DNA from: Phallusia mammillata
Lineage: Eukaryota
Direction: 5' to 3'
Assembly (NCBI GenBank): GCA_965637545.1
Contig: OZ281500.1
Coordinates: forward strand, 8,990,001-9,054,000
Length of the DNA stretch: 64,000 bases
How positions within the stretch are numbered: the first letter of the stretch is position 1; each line of letters opens with the position of its first letter. A model generated the notes under the pieces. That model made no database searches, had not been told where the DNA came from, and worked only from the letters and a program-made list of their open reading frames with translations. The position numbers and the translations under genes are program-made. Below, in pieces: positions 33,166-42,700 of the stretch.

Positions 33166-34383
33166 ATGTCTAAAACTTTAAGTGTGCTTTTAATTTCACC
33201 AACTATTCCTTCCACTGGTAATTTATCCACAGTTGGTCGATTACAGGCACACTTTTCTAAGAACAACATAAATACATCTCTGTGCAGTGTTTCACAATTG
33301 TGCAAAAACAATGAACTATGCAATGTAACAAGAGTAAACCAGATTGTAAATGAAACTCAAAGCCATGGCATTCTTTTGTTGCACGCTTATAAAAGTGGAT
33401 GTTTTGTTATTTGTTCCTGCAATAAGAACTGTAAGTTGAGGGTGCGGTATGGTTTGGTTTTTGGTGGAACTGACTTAAATGAAGATATCAAAAATAAACA
33501 AAAATGTATCATAATTAAAAAGTGCATTGAGGGGGCAGCCTTCTCTATTGCATTTACTAAAGATCTGAAATTTGCTGCAACGGAATTATCTCCTTCTGCG
33601 CTGGTTCTAGTAAAAGCACAAGGCTTAGACTATGACTTGTTTGATCTGTGCTCCAATAAAATGAGTTCTTTCCAGTACAAACCATTTTTTCCCAAAAAGA
33701 AACCAATCATTTTTGTTTTACCATGCTCTATTCGGCATGTAAAAGATCCACTTTTTGTAGCCAAAGACTTTATGGACTGGGCTTCTTCTATTCGTCATGT
33801 TCAAGATGTAAGACTTTTAATTCTTGGAAGCATAATGGATAAAGATTTCAGCTCTCAGTTTTTAATGCAGTTGGATAAGTTGCAAACTACAACTAGTTTA
33901 GCAACACAATGGTTGCAAAAGAAGTTCAGAAAAAGGGCTGTTGTCTCATCAATAAAGGGTCAACCAAGCAGTGACTATGATGTGGAGACTTGGATTAATG
34001 ACAGCAATGGAAATGTAGTTCAACATTTTCCCGCATTGACCAAAGAGCATTTCCTTGGCTTACTTTCTGATGGAGTATTTTATGCACTTATTAATACATC
34101 ACTGAGTGAAGGAATGTCATCAGCCATACTGGAAGCCATGTCCATTGGGGTTGTTGTCTTAGCGAGAGATATACCAAGCAACAAGTCAATTATTACTGAT
34201 GGGTACAATGGTTTTTTATTTCGTAATGGTGGTGGATTTGTTAATCAGGCAAAGAACCTACTTAACAATGACCCCCTTAGACAAAAAATCATTTCTAATG
34301 CAAGGACATATGCCAGACTACATCACAGCCCTTGTGAAGAAGCAAAGTTCTATGTTTCACTTGCCCAAAGCACATTTTTGTAA
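33166..34383 (+). CDS. GLT1D1: Glycosyltransferase 1 domain-containing protein 1 (GT-B, GT4-like), single exon, 405 aa
   Basis: Uninterrupted ORF with TGNLSTVGRLQAHF, FGGTDLNED and INTSLSEGMSSAILEAMS...VLARDIPSN, matching GLT1D1 motifs as I recall them. Confidence 0.85.
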   Translation: MSKTLSVLLISPTIPSTGNLSTVGRLQAHFSKNNINTSLCSVSQLCKNNELCNVTRVNQIVNETQSHGILLLHAYKSGCFVICSCNKNCKLRVRYGLVFGGTDLNEDIKNKQKCIIIKKCIEGAAFSIAFTKDLKFAATELSPSALVLVKAQGLDYDLFDLCSNKMSSFQYKPFFPKKKPIIFVLPCSIRHVKDPLFVAKDFMDWASSIRHVQDVRLLILGSIMDKDFSSQFLMQLDKLQTTTSLATQWLQKKFRKRAVVSSIKGQPSSDYDVETWINDSNGNVVQHFPALTKEHFLGLLSDGVFYALINTSLSEGMSSAILEAMSIGVVVLARDIPSNKSIITDGYNGFLFRNGGGFVNQAKNLLNNDPLRQKIISNARTYARLHHSPCEEAKFYVSLAQSTFL

Positions 34384-34802: not shown

Positions 34803-37800
34803 ATGAGTATATTTGTATTGACTCAAAATGCTGTGAACAGATATCAAGCAAAAAGATTGGTGAAAATTGTAAGAGCTTGTTATTCCAACATGGAATCTGC
34901 TAAAAGGTACCAGTATTTCAACAGACTGATACAACTTTTAACATAAACAACATTCACATTTACTTTATATTCCTTGGTTTATTTATGTAATAAACCTTAC
35001 CATCTTGTTTACACATCTTTACAAAAAATGTTTTTTTACAGTGAAACACTTTGCATACCCATGCAATCAGCAAAAGCCTTTGTAAAGAACTGCATAACAG
35101 CAGCTGGAGCTTCAAACAATCATGCAAATGATATGGCCGAATTACTGGTGACTGCTGATTACAGAGGCCACTTCAGTCATGGACTTAACAGACTTGGTAA
35201 TTGCAATATTTTCAAATTTTAGAAAAGTGTAATGTATTAGAATTATGTTTTTCTTAGGTGCATAATATTTAGTGAATAAACTAAGTCTAGTAAAACCCTT
35301 TCTCTCCAGAAATGTATGTGAATGACTTGAAGACTCAGATTACCTCCACGGAAGGAGATCCAAAAGTAGAAAAGGAAACCGCTGCCACTGCAATGGTTGA
35401 TGGAAGAAACCTGCTTGGACCAGCAGTAGGAACATTTTGTATGGACCTTGCAATAAAGGTTAATTGCCATGGATGAGCCTTTTTTACTGTACAACTTTTG
35501 TTTCGAACCACTTTTGTTGCTGTTTTTTGCCTCCTAGTTTTGCAATGTAAGGCCAATGCACCATTTAATTGTTTTTTAAAGCAACAACATGTTTGTATTT
35601 GTAGAAAGCAAAAGAAGCTGGAGTTGGTTGGGTGGCAGCTCGTCAATCCAACCATTATGGTATTGCAGGATATTACGCTTTGATGGCATCAAACCAGGGC
35701 CTGATTGTAAGTTTCCCAGATAATACAAAGATATGTGGCAACTTTATTTTATATGGTACCAAGATGTGGTAGTGTATTCGCAAATTTTTGTCCAGGGTAT
35801 GTCCATGACCAATACATCACCCTTTGTGGTCCCTACCAGAGCTAAAACAGCCACTCTTGGTACAAATCCCGTGGCATTTGCTGCACCTGCCAAATCTGGC
35901 AAAAGTTTTGTTCTTGACATGGCAACCTCTACTGTAGCAGTTGGCAAAATAGAATTGCAACAAAGGTCAGTCCAATCTAGAGTTTCTAAAAAATCTTTTT
36001 GGTGTGTTATTAGGCTTAAACAAAACTTTTGTGAATATTGGCATGTGGTGTAGCAAGGTACAAATTACATATTGCTTGCTTAATCACCAACATGAAATTG
36101 ATTGAAAAAATATTTTTTCATTCTTCTGCTGAGGGCCATGTCAAGTGCAAAGCATTTGAGCCAGTTGTAGCTTAGTGTATTTCTGCAAGTTTTGACATTT
36201 CCATACTAATGTATTTTGTTCCATTTTGAAAAGGGTTTTAGTTTTACAAACACAACGCCATGCCTATTCACCACTAGAGCGACGGCACAATCACTTGGTT
36301 CAAATCCTATCTCATGTGCTGCACCATCAAGTGATGGAAAAGCCTTTGTCCTTGACATGGCAACCACCACTGTAGCATATGGCAAAGTAGAAGTATCTGC
36401 TAGGTTTGTCTGCTTTGCATAGACCAGGTGTGCACAAGTCAAATAAGGAAGTGTGCCCTAGATGTTTATACCATCTAGGAGTTTGGGATCTTGGTGGTTT
36501 ATGGTCTGTTGAGTTAATGAAACAATGAGCATGTTTTAACTCAATAAACATACACAATGGATATTATGCAGTAACAAGTATAAAGCTATTATGTAGGAAC
36601 ATTATTTGAAGACACAAATCGATGCATAATAAATTCTAACATATAATAGTTTTACTTATTTAACCTACTGCATGTCACTTTTAACATTCTTGTTGAGTAT
36701 TGTGCACCCCTGGCTTAGATATTCCTGGTCCCAAGTTATTGAACTTTTTCAGTTTGCATATCTGGAATGATTTTCTTTTAATGGTTTGATTTCATTAAAT
36801 TAATACTTGCATGTTTCTGATAAACATACTGGCTTATTGCCATAACCATGTACCTTTTTCATCCAGTGTTTAGGCAAAAATAATGATGACGCCTTGATCA
36901 GTTGCCAAAGTATCCTACATGTAAACTATGTTTTTTAAGAGGTTATTATGTTTGTGATGAAAACATAATTAACCAAATGCCTTATTTTGGATGTGCTGCC
37001 TAATTTAAAAGCGAGAGTATTCTGCATGAAGGCATCAATTACAAACAATTTTTGCATGATTTGGGGTGACAATAGTTGTCAAAACATAAAATATGATGTT
37101 TGCTGACTTGACACAAAGTTCAATTTTTTTCTCGGATTAAACATTTACCATTGTGTAAATAGAAAGAATGAAGCAATCCCCACAGGCTGGGGTGCAGATC
37201 CAAATGGTGTCGAAACCAATGACCCTAGTAAGGTTTTGCAAGGAGGTGGGCTGCTTCCACTTGGTGGATCAGAGCAAAGCGGTGGTTACAAAGGTAATAC
37301 TGGTGGAGCAACTTATACTCATTGATGTTAATTACATGTTCTGTTTTTTAACTCACTGAAACTGACTGCATACCTAAAACCATTTCAATGTGTTAAGGAA
37401 TGTGTTTTCAGAGTCTTTCAGTTGACAAAGTTACCTTATACTATTATTTTTATTAGATTTGGGCTTACATGTTGTTCATAATTTTAGCATCCCTGTTTAA
37501 TCCCATTGTTTAGTTATATACTGTATTTTTTTTAACATGCCTTGAGTTTGTATTGTAATATTGACTGTACCTTGTGTTTTGCAGGTTATGGTCTTGCCAT
37601 GATGGTTGAGGTGATGTGTGGAATTTTGGCAGGAGCAGGATTTGGCCCAAACATACGAAAATGGGGGACAACAGAACGCATTGCAGACCTGGTAAAATTT
37701 ACACAAAACTTAACAATATAACCTTAAAGCCAAAATACCCATACCCTTACGTACTAAAAAAAATTGACAAGTAAAACTTTTTTATCTACTGAAATTTGCA

Positions 37801-38171
37801 CGTAATTGTTGTGAAAGCCTTATGCAAACACCAACGCAAAGTTCAATATTTGTACACGACAGGGCCAATGCTTTATCGCTGTTGACCCGAACGCGTTTTG
37901 CCCGGGCTTCGAAAATCGCATGCAGGATTTAATGGATTTGCAACGAGACCTTAATCCAAGCGACCCTAAAAAACCCGTGCTTGTGGCCGGTGATCCGGAA
38001 CGAAGTCACATGACCAAATGTGATTCATTAGGTGGAATCCCATATCCGCAAAATATCGTCAAACACATGGTAGGCAGTTTGTTTTTTTGCATGGAATTTA
38101 AGTGTAATATTTGCTTTTTTTAGAACGAAATGGGAGAAAAACTAGGCGTCGAAAGCATGAAAGCTATTTAA
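34803..38171 (+). CDS. Malate/L-sulfolactate/ureidoglycolate dehydrogenase (Ldh_2) family oxidoreductase with two alternative copies of exon 5
   Basis: Exons 34803 (or 34890)-34906, 35042-35196, 35310-35458, 35605-35706, [35796-35965 OR 36234-36403], 37163-37293, 37585-37691, 37863-38069, 38124-38171. Motifs [69 protein letters not shown]. Confidence 0.92.
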
Positions 38172-38372
38172 CCTCAAACGAAGTTCGCTTGTCAACAAAA
38201 GTGCCTGTTCTACGCAATTGATAATTTAGCTATGCGTTGTTTAGTGTAATTCAGGGTCAGACTAACTTTTCGACGTGACAAAAAACAATGTACATTTTGT
38301 TACTATATGCAACAGCAAAAATATTTTTGATCACAGTTATATCTGTCAATTTTTTGTTATGCCTAGACGCGA

Positions 38373-38488
38373 TTTTTTTTCACGGGGTTCGAACCCAGAA
38401 CACTCCCGGGGACGAATCCCGATCAAGTTTTTTTTTACATGTCTGTATGTGGGTCAGGCGCGCCAGACCATTCGGCCAAGTTCCTGCA
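38373..38488 (-). mobile_element. tRNA-derived SINE-like element (short form)
   Basis: Minus strand: A box tggccgaatgg, B box ggttcgaaccc, A-tail. Flanked by ctagacgcga / ctagatgcga (10-bp TSD-like, 1 mismatch). Confidence 0.75.
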
Positions 38489-39713
38489 CTAGATGCGAAT
38501 TAATTAGGAATTTGAATACTCATTACAATAAGCCATATTGTGGAAGAGAAAAACGTAGAACCAGATAAAACTCATGTCAACGTCGATGTAACTTTCTTCA
38601 ACACAGACTTGCCTCAAAAAAGTATTTTCTGCGGATCGAATCACACTGTATAAAAGTTGATAGTTTAATTAACCAGCATTTTTTGACTTTTTTGTCGTTT
38701 GCCCGCAATATGTGCCACGAATAAAATGGTACTCTGCCAGTTTACCGCAAACCTAACAAGATTTGAGTTCCATGGTGAGGTGTTTTTTCACCTTACTGCA
38801 TCTGTTTGGATACAAATTGGTGATGACCTAATTTTAAAAAATGTTTCTACTTATTTTTTTTGTTTCAAGTGAATTTATTGCTTTTAAAAAAGTTTTTGCT
38901 TTTACTAACCACAGAATTTTGTCAAACGGCCAGTATATACAAAAAGCGAAATACTGTTTGTTTGTTTTCGAAATTTCAAAAACGGTGCCATGTTTTTTTC
39001 CTGCTGCTGGTGTTGGTTTACACGAAAACCAATTCAGTGTGTAATTGTTTCTACTGATATCCTCTTCTGAAATTAAGTTTGTCCAACCGACTTTGGTTTT
39101 TTCGTAACAGTATGTTTAATTTTACACCATATTGTCAAGCCGAATATAATTACCAATGGTTGTCAATAAAAAAACGTGTGCCTTAATCTCGAGTGTTAAC
39201 TTTTATTGCAAGAAAAGTTCTACATTAGGAAAGTTTTTTTCCGAACGTGGCGGAAAGGGTCCAACCACAAGTCATATTTTTTCAATCAGAAAGAATTCAC
39301 TCCGAAAAAACAACGTATTTTTTATTACGTGACCCAAATACTTACTGGGATATTGGACTTAAGAACTCAGCGATTAATAAAGCTAAGAGCCCCGCCCCAA
39401 AAATTTACAGTTAACCGATTATCATTTTGAATCCGCCTTCAAGTTAATCCATACTAGCTTTCAAACTGAATCTATATTTAAGCACATTGACAATCGTCGC
39501 GCTATAAAATATTAATATAGACCAGCAGTTGAACTTCAAGGTATTGTTGTTTTGTAATCCCACGCACAATTCTGTAGTATTTTGTAACATCCGACCTAGT
39601 ATTTTGACGACGATCACGACGGCTAATATTAAGGCTAAGCTGTACTCTACAATTTGCAAAACACGGGTCGGTCAGTCAGTTGTAAAAGCTGTCTATAACG
39701 GGTGGATCTAAAA

Positions 39714-42700
39714 ATGCGTCTGGTAAATTTACTGGTGTTGTCCCTTGGAGTTTGTAATTGTACGGCTACATCCTGTAATTCGACATCTGAAATAAAGATG
39801 GCAAAAGGATCGTGGATTTTGCAACCCGATGCAGATCGCAGCGAGATTGACTTTCGTTTTTTTCTTCACCACTACCGACAAGCGACTGCCTACATCCTTG
39901 AACAATGCGCCCTGTTTTGCATCAAAGACTTCAGGTGAAGTAACAAGTTTAATTAGGAAAGACATGGAAATGCATACTGGATGTACAAAAACATTTTTGT
40001 TTTTGGGAAAATCTAGTCAACCGGGTATTTTTTGTGATTAGTGATCTAGATTAATCGATTTGCCACATTTACAATGTACGTAGTAGACGTTGTTACTCAG
40101 TTTAAATTCTTCCTGATAGGTGCAAGTCGTACAACTACCTAAGTGGAGAAAACATTTGTGAGCTAAATCATGTGGACAGGACTATGGTCGAAGTAGAGGA
40201 CTGGTTACAACATGATGGAAATTGGATTCCGACATTCGACAAGCTCATTCGGTATCCAGGATCACAATACCATTCCAGAGATTCACTTCTGCTTACGCCC
40301 GAGGTTATCTATTTTTGAACTGGTAAAATTGGTCTGGTTTTTGCCTTTAACAAAGTGTTGATGAACAATGCACATACTTTGGCGCGATGCCTAAACCAGT
40401 TCAGCTGCGTTGCAAGCCCTATGGAAGAATTCAAAATTACATTTTCGTGTCAATTGCTCAACTATAGGTTACTGGCAAAACTGCCAAAAATTGGAACGTT
40501 ATTTTTTCCATTTCCAGAGTCTTTCTCACATTGAAACAGGACCTTGTTCATCATACAGGTGTCCAGTTGGTCACTTGTGCACTCCACAATACGGGGATGG
40601 TTTGAAACCGGCATGTGTCAAGGTCGATTACGAACTACAAGGTGATTATTTTCAAAAATCCAATGTCATTGATTTTTAATAACTGTACCGCCACGTTACG
40701 ATTGCAAAATATTTTTGTAAACATTTTGTGGTGTCTTTTTTCTCTTATAATGAATATGTTTTTAGATCTCCAGGAGCAGTGGTCAGCTTGGTCGTATTGG
40801 GGTGTATGTTCAGCGACTTGTGGCGGTGGAGTACAAAGTAGGACACGAGTTTGTAAAGAAGATGTTGGAAAGTTGTCGTGCATTGGACAATCACAAGATG
40901 TACGACTCTGCATGGAGCAGAACTGCCCTCGTAAGTTACAGCAGTATCGCATAAATTGGGGACCTTGAGGCCAATGTATTGTTGAGTTAGGCTATATGTC
41001 TAACAGTAAGTCAACTTGATCACATTAACATACCATCAATATTCAAATTTAACTCTTTGGGTAGGTTACTCGCAGTGGAGGGATTACATTTTTTTGTCAG
41101 CCGGTTCTATCACAAAAGTCATATTTTTCAGCCGGTTCTGTTACAAAACGTCTAGTGACAGTAACCAGTAATGCTAACCGGTTCGCTGATCTCATAAAAT
41201 TTCATTAAACGGTTCTTTTGAACCGGTGCGAACCGGCTGAATCCCACCACTGGTTACTCGCCTATTTTTTGTGTAAAATATGTTTAACAACACAACTGCA
41301 TTTTTGGCAAACCAAATAGGCTAGTCTCATTATTAAAACAAAAGTGTTCCAGCAGTTGCTTTTTACATGAGGAAAAGTCGCGTATTGCAAATGACTAGGG
41401 AAGTGTGCTTTTTTGTTCTGAATAATGGACTAAAGGCTTTGCAGGTTGAAACTTCAAATCTTTGTTTATCAACTAGTGTTTTTATCGTTACAGACTGGTC
41501 GCAGTGGGGACCGTGGAGTGATTGTGGCCCAAACAAATGTGGATCAGGCAAGAAGCAAAGAAGCCGAACGTGTCGCTGGGGAGTGCTTCCCGATCACAAA
41601 TCGTGTAATGGAAGTTATAGCGACGAGATTGCATGTCGATTAATTTCATGCACAGGTAAAAAAGAAATCAATAAATAGAGACCATAAAAGCAAGCAAGAA
41701 AAATTATCTTCCCAAGTTGCTGGTTTTATACTTTATCAGATCTGTATAAGCCTATTTGATAAAACAGTATGATACGCTACTGGTTCTTTAAATGTCCAAA
41801 CAGGCAATGATTCTTTTTATGTCAGCTATTACTATTTCAAGTACCCTATGAATTGAGCAGTTGAGGTACTCGGCAAAACATTTGGAATGGCGTTTTCTCT
41901 GCGATGTTGTTCTATGTATCGAAAAATCGCTATATGTTTGCTATATGTTACAGCACCTCTTGCGTTGAGCAATGGAAAGTTTGGACATCTAGCAATTTAT
42001 GATGACAGAATGCTATATAGTCCAATTTGGAGAACGGTTTGTCAGGTATGAATCAAACTACGAGGTAATAAATTTGTAAATTATTTTAAATATGATAATT
42101 TTGTTTGAATAGCCCAAGTCACAGGCAGCGCAAATCGGAGCACAGCGGGCTGTTTGCAAATATCTAAATTTGGTTGCGGATGTGTATGTTGGAGATACAG
42201 ATTTGGTCTCCGCAGATGAACAGGTATAGATTAGCTGAAACAGTTTTGTTATTAAACGAATCTCCCGCAGACAATAAAATGTATAAAAGAAAGATTCTTG
42301 CTTCTGATCAGTATAGTATTGGACTGTTTCATAAAAACAGATAAAAGCATAAATCGTTTCTTTTAATAACAGAAATATATATTTCGCCTTAATAAATAGG
42401 CATCGTCAGTTTCTGCAAAAAAGCAAACATGTAAGGGGCTGTCGGTAAAAGTAGTAAAGTAGTTACTGCTTTTATCTGTTTTTATGAAACAGTCCAATAC
42501 TATACTAGGTATAGATTAGGGCATTTTTTGACTATTTGTTTTGTATTTATTTTACAATAGAAAAGTTTGATAAATACCGATGGATGGCGCAATTACTTAA
42601 CTTTACAGTGAAACTAGAATGGGGTTAGGAACTAAATTTAGCGACGGGAACTAAGTTTTTAGGTTGCTTTTATCGCTATTGTTATTATGAAACCTCACCC

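Follow-up and report, generated by a model that had tools for sequence, protein, structure and literature searches.

Twin homologous exons used singly in an ascidian Ldh_2-family gene, and an intronic element complementary to both

Introduction

In the pyruvate kinase gene PKM, exons 9 and 10 are homologous and mutually exclusive, the exclusivity is achieved through splicing repressors, and the functional effect of the swap is known. RNA structure does this work in other genes: between the ATE1 exons 7a and 7b lies an element R3, each of the two exons is preceded by an element of its own, R1 or R4, and the pairings R1-R3 and R3-R4 compete (Kalinina et al. 2021, PMC7797038). Docking sites and selectors of this kind have been explained by tandem exon duplication in which one arm of a stem-loop was duplicated as well (Ivanov & Pervouchine 2018, PMC6071210). 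Here we analysed a 64,000-nt stretch of the Phallusia mammillata genome (contig OZ281500.1, positions 8,990,001 to 9,054,000 of the forward strand), which we call the window and whose own coordinates are used throughout. It holds a gene that in all likelihood encodes an Ldh_2-family (L-sulfolactate-dehydrogenase-like) NAD(P)H oxidoreductase with nine exon positions, position 5 being filled by one of two homologous exons, A or B, and the intron between A and B contains an element, E, that is complementary to both of them. Neither this exon pair nor alternative splicing of Ldh_2 genes in animals turned up in a literature search.

Results

Two homologous exons at position 5

The two exons at position 5 are as follows.
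Exon 5a (A), 35796..35965, + strand: 170 nt, phase 0 to 2, spliced in 4/4 RNA runs, with a Pfam Ldh_2 match.
Exon 5b (B), 36234..36403, + strand: 170 nt, phase 0 to 2, splice joints in runs X5 and X9, with a Pfam match and orthologues.

The original prediction, made from the letters of the window alone, had described twin 170-nt exons of phase 0 to 2 with AG/GT ends, and the window sequence confirmed it. Both exons have a stop-free frame and translate into the peptides given there, and their borders read ag/GG...AG/gt (the slash marks the border), at 35794/35966 for A and 36232/36404 for B. Pairwise alignment of the two encoded proteins gave 31/55 identical residues (E value 7e-23), and the A and B isoforms differ at 25 of the 56 residues of the segment (55% protein identity). 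At the DNA level A and B are 65% identical, with differences mostly at third and first codon positions. Each exon matched positions 132-185/186 of the Pfam profile PF02615 Ldh_2 (E value 1.8e-20 for A and 1.9e-16 for B). The introns flanking A and those flanking B showed no similarity when compared, which meant that the recognisable duplication comprises the exon only, and no third sense copy of the twin exon was found within the 64-kb window. The splice signals of B are poorer than those of A, with a purine-rich tract (gaaaag/G) and the donor TAG/gtttgt.

Since 170 is not a multiple of 3, forms with both exons or with neither carry early stops. Either A or B alone gives a spliced open reading frame (ORF) of 390 amino acids (aa) from the ATG at 34803; A and B together lead to a stop at TAG 36373-36375 after 273 aa, and with neither exon the ORF ends after 172 aa, so the frame break that had been predicted for double inclusion and for skipping was reproduced.

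Both single-exon mRNAs are present in RNA contigs

The exon model was built on transcript contigs of four runs (X1, X5, X9 and X10) from four studies. Joints of exon 4 to A (35706>35796) and of A to exon 6 (35965>37163) were present in 4/4 runs, the joint of exon 4 to B (35706>36234) in X5, and that of B to exon 6 (36403>37163) in X5 and X9. All four joints named for checking in the original prediction were thus recovered. The B joints of X5 lie on a single short contig that extends 27 nt and 31 nt into the flanking exons, and in X9 one contig spans B, exon 6 and exon 7. The depth of these exon 4-B-exon 6 and B-exon 6-exon 7 contigs was of the same order as that of the A contigs. Neither an A to B joint nor an exon 4 to exon 6 joint was listed among the contigs of the four runs; assembled contigs lose rare forms and give no ratios, so rare double inclusion or skipping could escape them.

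Seven small RNA-like runs of studies P1 and P2 contained every sampled sequence word of exon B, and an eighth run contained 0.93 of them; studies P3 and P6 had part of the words, and the four listed runs of study P4 had none. Both single-exon mRNAs exist, and B occurs in some samples and is absent from others. It is very probable that productive enzyme is made with A or B singly, which gives two versions of equal length that differ around the active site.

Both exons are conserved in relatives

A-type exons in three other assemblies were 73-77% identical to A and 51-54% to B, while B-type exons in three other assemblies were 63-70% identical to B and 51-63% to A. All eight exons (four A and four B, the window included) are 170 nt long with AG/GT borders. 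In species 1 (two haplotigs), the A-type exon is 77% identical to A and 51% to B, and the B-type exon 70% to B and 51% to A; A precedes B by 29-35 kb on the same strand and contig, and exon 6 lies 8.5 kb past B. An upstream walk of ~17-20 kb from B in species 1 and 2 met no A, and the A of species 1 was located later by protein search. Within the stretches covered, species 2 gave a B-type exon, and species 3 gave exons 2-4 and an A-type exon. Species 4 has both twins on one 13-kb contig (L013), 2.66 kb apart with A upstream of B. In species 1-3 the introns of this region measure 9-35 kb and are full of reverse-transcriptase and transposase ORFs; those in the window have 89-1200 nt.

The ratio of nonsynonymous to synonymous substitution rates (dN/dS) was 0.05-0.16 among A orthologues and 0.13 for the two B orthologue pairs with estimable dS; dS was > 1.1 in every estimable pair, A or B, and too saturated for an estimate in the other four B pairs. 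With dN of 0.20-0.31 for B versus 0.12-0.21 for A, B evolves faster. By these ratios both copies are under purifying selection across deeply diverged relatives. The original prediction had claimed selection on both exons and had proposed to look for them in related genomes, and intact 170-nt B-type exons were found in three assemblies, with dN/dS of ~0.13 where estimable. It had also named a B that is never included and is decaying in relatives as one case against itself; what we found is a B spliced in X5 and X9 and kept in relatives.

On a tree of the 56 residues, the four B exons grouped together (ultrafast bootstrap, UFBoot, 84), with a nematode protein and a Logan protein nested inside with weak support. 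The clustering of the four B exons indicates that the duplication predates the split of the species compared here. A protein of the nematode Angiostrongylus shares the B-type residues Cys at 10, Ser at 23 and Tyr at 49. We did not read the nematode-B grouping on this 56-residue tree as a sign of a duplication of bilaterian age; it may reflect convergence, long-branch attraction or an older origin of the B type. In the gar orthologue, the segment is split over two exons, each single-copy and with no duplicate, and the only matches to exon B in a metagenome scan were Ldh_2 genes of soil-type bacteria.

The same region is repeated or variable in two other annotated proteins. A Mya arenaria "MDH-like protein" carries a 32-residue stretch (LGTNP...LDMAT...GK) twice in tandem with one difference, which is either an assembly artefact or the result of annotating across a tandem duplication of the homologous half-exon that arose recently and independently. 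The Cherax quadricarinatus "YjmC isoform X3" belongs to a set of at least three annotated isoforms and includes a B-like ...VAYGKVEV... stretch; exon swapping in this Ldh_2 region may occur in crustaceans as well.

The swapped segment maps to the substrate and cofactor site

Residues were mapped by ungapped alignment of A and B to AllD and DpkA, with the offset checked on His44 and Arg48; the roles of the residues are those described for AllD (PMC3527362) and for DpkA (PMC8070496). The DpkA match at position 8 relies on an inferred 10-residue offset between Pseudomonas putida numbering and the 1WTJ chain. Equivalents of the invariant AllD residues His44, Arg48 and His116 are all in constant exons (SHGLNR here against SHGAVR in AllD, and SNHYGIAG against NHYG/NHFG in 1V9N and 2X06). 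The aligned positions of the segment, with the residues in the four exons of each type, are these.
Position 7 (AllD Ser140), binds substrate and nicotinamide: A, Thr in 4/4; B, Thr in 3/4 and Ser in species 1.
Position 8 (AllD Asp141, DpkA Met141), substrate binding in AllD and substrate-ring recognition in DpkA: A, Ser in 4/4; B, Thr in 4/4.
Position 14 (AllD Phe147), surroundings of the adenine: A, Thr; B, T/M/M/C.
Positions 23 and 25 (AllD Thr156 and Pro158), the Pro stacking on nicotinamide: A, T and P; B, S or T, and P.
Position 41 (AllD Asp174), ribose binding: A, Asp; B, Asp.
Positions 46-56, start of the mobile lid (AllD Val179-Ser194).

By alignment, four features of the active site fall within the segment: the substrate loop with TN-T-x-P, the nicotinamide loop with G-T/S-N-P, the LDMAT Asp that binds ribose, and the beginning of the lid. 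The earlier claim that the segment contributes to substrate and NAD(P)H binding can thus be stated more closely, as first-shell residues. The cofactor-contact motifs are G-T-N-P and LDMAT in A, and G-S-N-P (with T in two B orthologues) and LDMAT in B. Since the catalytic and cofactor core is kept, both isoforms would be expected to be active.

Six differences between A and B were fixed by type among the four exons of each type, and position 49 also differs.
Position 2: A, M; B, F.
Position 8: A, S; B, T.
Position 12: A, aliphatic; B, F/Y.
Position 28, three residues past the nicotinamide-stacking Pro: A, F; B, C.
Position 55: A, Q; B, S/A.
Position 56: A, Q/K; B, A/D.
Position 49: A, V/L; B, Y/Y/F/S.

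DpkA Met141, the equivalent of position 8, is one of two residues whose joint mutation shifted substrate preference (PMC8070496), and AllD Asp141 sets the substrate Km (PMC3527362). The A and B isoforms probably differ in the substrate pocket or in kinetics, as far as these alignments can tell, and a different substrate preference or different kinetics of A versus B, in the sense of the two specificities suggested by the original prediction, is plausible.

An intronic element complementary to both exons

The original prediction had proposed a search of the introns for docking and selector pairs, and this search was positive. The elements concerned are listed here.
Element E, 36128..36165 (core 36135-36158), + strand: in the A-B intron; A and B each contain its complement, at homologous places in their coding sequence; candidate docking site.
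E partner in exon A, 35893..35930, + strand: codes for ...KSFVLDMAT...; score 43, -42.4 kcal/mol.
E partner in exon B, 36339..36361, + strand: codes for ...KAFVLDMA...; score 37, -30.2 kcal/mol.
Second intronic stretch, 36019..36047, + strand: complementary to exon A 35884-35912 only (29 nt, 79%); score 35, -31.7 kcal/mol; weaker than E.

Ungapped helix scores were compared with those of real genomic background windows of equal length. Against a background of 23.4 +/- 3.2 in the window (150 windows), the E-A score was reached by 0/150 and the E-B score by 1/150. E was the top-scoring helix partner of each twin exon across the whole pre-mRNA, and the A-E helix was present in both the minimum-energy and the centroid fold of the region. 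The 641-nt region as a whole did not fold unusually well (z = -1.3).

In species 4, an element between the twins (L013 10680-10707) is complementary to nt 115-142 of both exons. Its helix scores were 50 and 49 against backgrounds of 31 +/- 4 and 28 +/- 3 (reached by 0/40), its duplexes had -42.9 and -42.8 kcal/mol, and it was again the best partner of each exon. E of the window and the L013 element have a common core, GCCATGTC, whose partner is the GACATGGC within the LDMA codons, and the helix is extended in opposite directions in the two, so that its register differs. We consider it about as likely as not that E has a role in choosing the exon.

How one exon would be chosen

mRNAs with early stops upstream of exon junctions are degraded by nonsense-mediated decay. 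The stops in mRNAs with both exons or with neither lie well upstream of later junctions, so these mRNAs would be expected to be removed in this way, and the reading frame would at least keep productive mRNAs to one exon. E could pair with the same coding stretch in A or in B, never with both at once, and this may aid the choice. If ATE1 is a guide, pairing would mask one exon and leave the other to be spliced in, though E may act in either direction. Two other causes of exclusivity were considered and found no support in the sequence: steric hindrance, the A-B intron being 268 nt long, and U2/U12 incompatibility, every donor being GT with a U2-type sequence.

Structure of the gene, its 5' end and its neighbours

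Besides A and B, the gene comprises the following parts, all on the + strand.
Spliced-leader AG acceptor, 34839..34840, +: loose end of an X5 contig, mRNA body from 34841.
Exon 1, 34841..34906, +: joint 34906>35042 in 4/4 runs; first AUG of the trans-spliced mRNA at 34890 (MESAK...).
Exon 2, 35042..35196, +: contig joints; SHGLNR holds the equivalents of AllD Ser43-His44...Arg48; Ldh_2 positions 2-47.
Exon 3, 35310..35458, +: contig joints, spliced model.
Exon 4, 35605..35706, +: contig joints; SNHYGIAG with the family-invariant second histidine (aligned to 1V9N and 2X06).
Exon 6, 37163..37293, +: contig joints, spliced model.
Exon 7, 37585..37691, +: contig joints, spliced model.
Exon 8, 37863..38069, +: contig joints; Pfam Ldh_2 positions 263-332.
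Exon 9, 38124..38429, +: joint 38069>38124 and contigs to 38429; coding up to 38168, then the stop and the 3' untranslated region (UTR).

The exon pieces match positions 2-47, 132-186 and 263-332 of the Ldh_2 profile (333 positions), each above the gathering score. The spliced protein is ~60% identical over 348 aa to fish PF02615 proteins, of which "uncharacterized oxidoreductase YjmC-like" is the nearest named.

Before 34839 the X5 contig reads a template-switch primer tail and then ATTCTATTTGAATA, and continues into the genomic AG. ATTCTATTTGAATA together with AG is the 16-nt ascidian spliced leader (PMC1488885). The spliced leader on this contig shows that the DNA comes from a tunicate, that the runs are RNA and that the mature mRNA begins at 34841. 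Because the acceptor at 34839-34840 lies downstream of the in-frame ATG at 34803, the trans-spliced mRNA would be translated from 34890, and the protein from this AUG has 361 aa, which equals the length of the fish orthologues. An X1 contig without trans-splicing reaches back to 34770 and includes the ATG at 34803. A start at 34803 would add 29 basic and hydrophobic residues, and the longer form may be a real mRNA or just a precursor. The suggestion in the original prediction that the two exons might be combined with two localisations is thus weakened, because the spliced-leader acceptor removes the ATG at 34803, yet the X1 contig retains that ATG.

At 38288-38575 the depth of RNA contigs rises to 50-380, many differing loose ends flank the stretch to the left and right, and there is an A>G difference at 38426. 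These signs suggest that a copy from an expressed repeat family sits within the 3' UTR or immediately past it. Further downstream (40600-41700, +) there are ORFs with thrombospondin type-1 repeat signatures (WSxWS...CSxTCGxG), which are probably exons of a neighbouring secreted-protein gene. Directly upstream, on the same strand (33166-34383, +), lies an intronless group-1 glycosyltransferase gene of 405 aa (PF00534, E value 7e-13). In species 4, a group-1 glycosyltransferase at L013 2033-3286 also lies upstream of the Ldh_2 gene and is 41% identical to the neighbour in the window; going by this gene order, the glycosyltransferase-Ldh_2 microsynteny is kept across a deep divergence.

Discussion

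Some of our results count against the reading that A and B replace each other, give different enzymes and are chosen with the help of E, and we set them here beside the alternatives they favour. Exon B could be a little-used or decaying duplicate, its RNAs being splicing noise. Its splice signals are weaker, it evolves faster than A (dN 0.20-0.31 versus 0.12-0.21), and no spliced B joint was seen in the contigs of X1 or X10: X1 covers B only by two unspliced contigs that continue into the adjoining introns, and the contigs of X10 do not cover B. However, the frame of B, its 170-nt length and its AG/GT borders are intact in four species, its dN/dS is ~0.13 where estimable (synonymous sites being saturated), six differences from A are fixed by type, and clean B contigs reach a depth of the same order as A contigs, so we consider this explanation highly improbable. 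The pair could also be real and exclusive with equal catalysis, B serving expression control, stability, choice of dimer partner or regulation. Both copies retain Thr at position 7, T/S-N-P and the LDMAT Asp, the first-shell change is only the conservative Ser/Thr, and the determinants of NADH or NADPH preference in AllD and DpkA map outside the swapped exon (PMC3527362). Enzymes of this family form dimers through an extensive interface of Domain II (PMC3527362), and a literature search found no enzyme data on animal Ldh_2 (YjmC-like) members. But the type-fixed differences at 8, 12 and 28 cluster beside the substrate and nicotinamide contacts, and at position 141 a double mutation of DpkA shifted preference (PMC8070496) and the substrate Km of AllD is set (PMC3527362), so that equal catalysis seems to us rather unlikely, and two enzyme versions that differ in pocket or kinetics remain our preferred reading.

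For E, we give even chances to the alternative that it is a relic of small inverted exon duplications without a splicing role, exclusivity then coming only from the reading frame and nonsense-mediated decay. Read as its reverse complement, E resembles a decayed exon fragment, the z of -1.3 for the 641-nt fold is unremarkable, and the helix register differs between the two species. No E-like element was found in species 1-3, where +/-600 nt, 20-kb loci and the sequence within 10 kb were covered and the introns are 9-35 kb long. Moreover, the stronger pairing of E in the window is with A, yet A is seen in every run, which is a misfit with a simple rule that the paired exon is hidden. Against a relic stands that synonymous divergence is saturated and the neighbouring gene only 41% identical, yet a strong partner is found in the same intron and faces the same stretch of both exons. 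It is the top pre-mRNA helix in both lineages, 3/4 helices beat all background windows (E-B of the window being equalled by 1/150), and a neutral relic would be expected to have decayed. As for the fullest form of our reading, in which E and a coding selector (...FVLDMAT...) are under dual constraint and have been kept since before a deep ascidian split, with B giving a second substrate preference, we put it forward only tentatively and consider it rather unlikely.

Exons that swap part of a catalytic pocket are few but instructive (PKM, OGDH and ATE1 among them), and this gene adds a clean case outside vertebrates and insects. The natural A and B isoforms offer a ready comparison for the role of pocket positions, and the A-B intron, only 268 nt long and with a single element that fits either exon, is a small, testable model of how a duplicated exon turns either-or, in animals whose embryos accept minigenes by electroporation. 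If E does act in exon choice, the same nucleotides would be constrained by both the cofactor site and a splicing switch. Annotation of the Ldh_2 gene at the level of exons ought to give both products.

Tandem exons that exclude each other are a familiar phenomenon, as are competing structures, and the Ldh_2 pair is a new, well-supported case of the former. The enzyme aligns end to end with Escherichia coli AllD (4FJU/4H8A), Pseudomonas DpkA (2CWH), the Pyrococcus horikoshii protein 1V9N and Methanocaldococcus jannaschii ComC (2X06), and it has equivalents of His44, Arg48, Asp174, the second histidine and the T-N-P loop; those enzymes, however, come from prokaryotes, their genes have one exon each, and their substrates are known or proposed. 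With OGDH 4a/4b it has in common that one gene gives two enzyme forms through a swapped homologous exon of a functional segment, but OGDH belongs to another family and lineage, its exclusivity comes from distant branch points, and the functional effect is known there (PMC7969005). The closest likeness in arrangement is with ATE1, also an enzyme gene with tandem homologous exons of which one is used, and with a single intronic element complementary to two similar sequences. The ATE1 selectors R1 and R4 are intronic and overlap 3' splice sites, whereas here the facing sequences are coding (nt 100-142 of 170), and the ATE1 structures have been proven by experiment and include a further helix spanning 30 kb, where this locus has sequence evidence from two species. 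As in the docking-site/selector model, two copies of one arm face a single other arm, but in that model the arms are intronic and the docking sites lie in flanking introns, while here the duplicated arm is exonic and constrained by coding, and the docking site would lie in the internal intron. Exonic selectors are thus a possible twist on the known pattern of competing structures.

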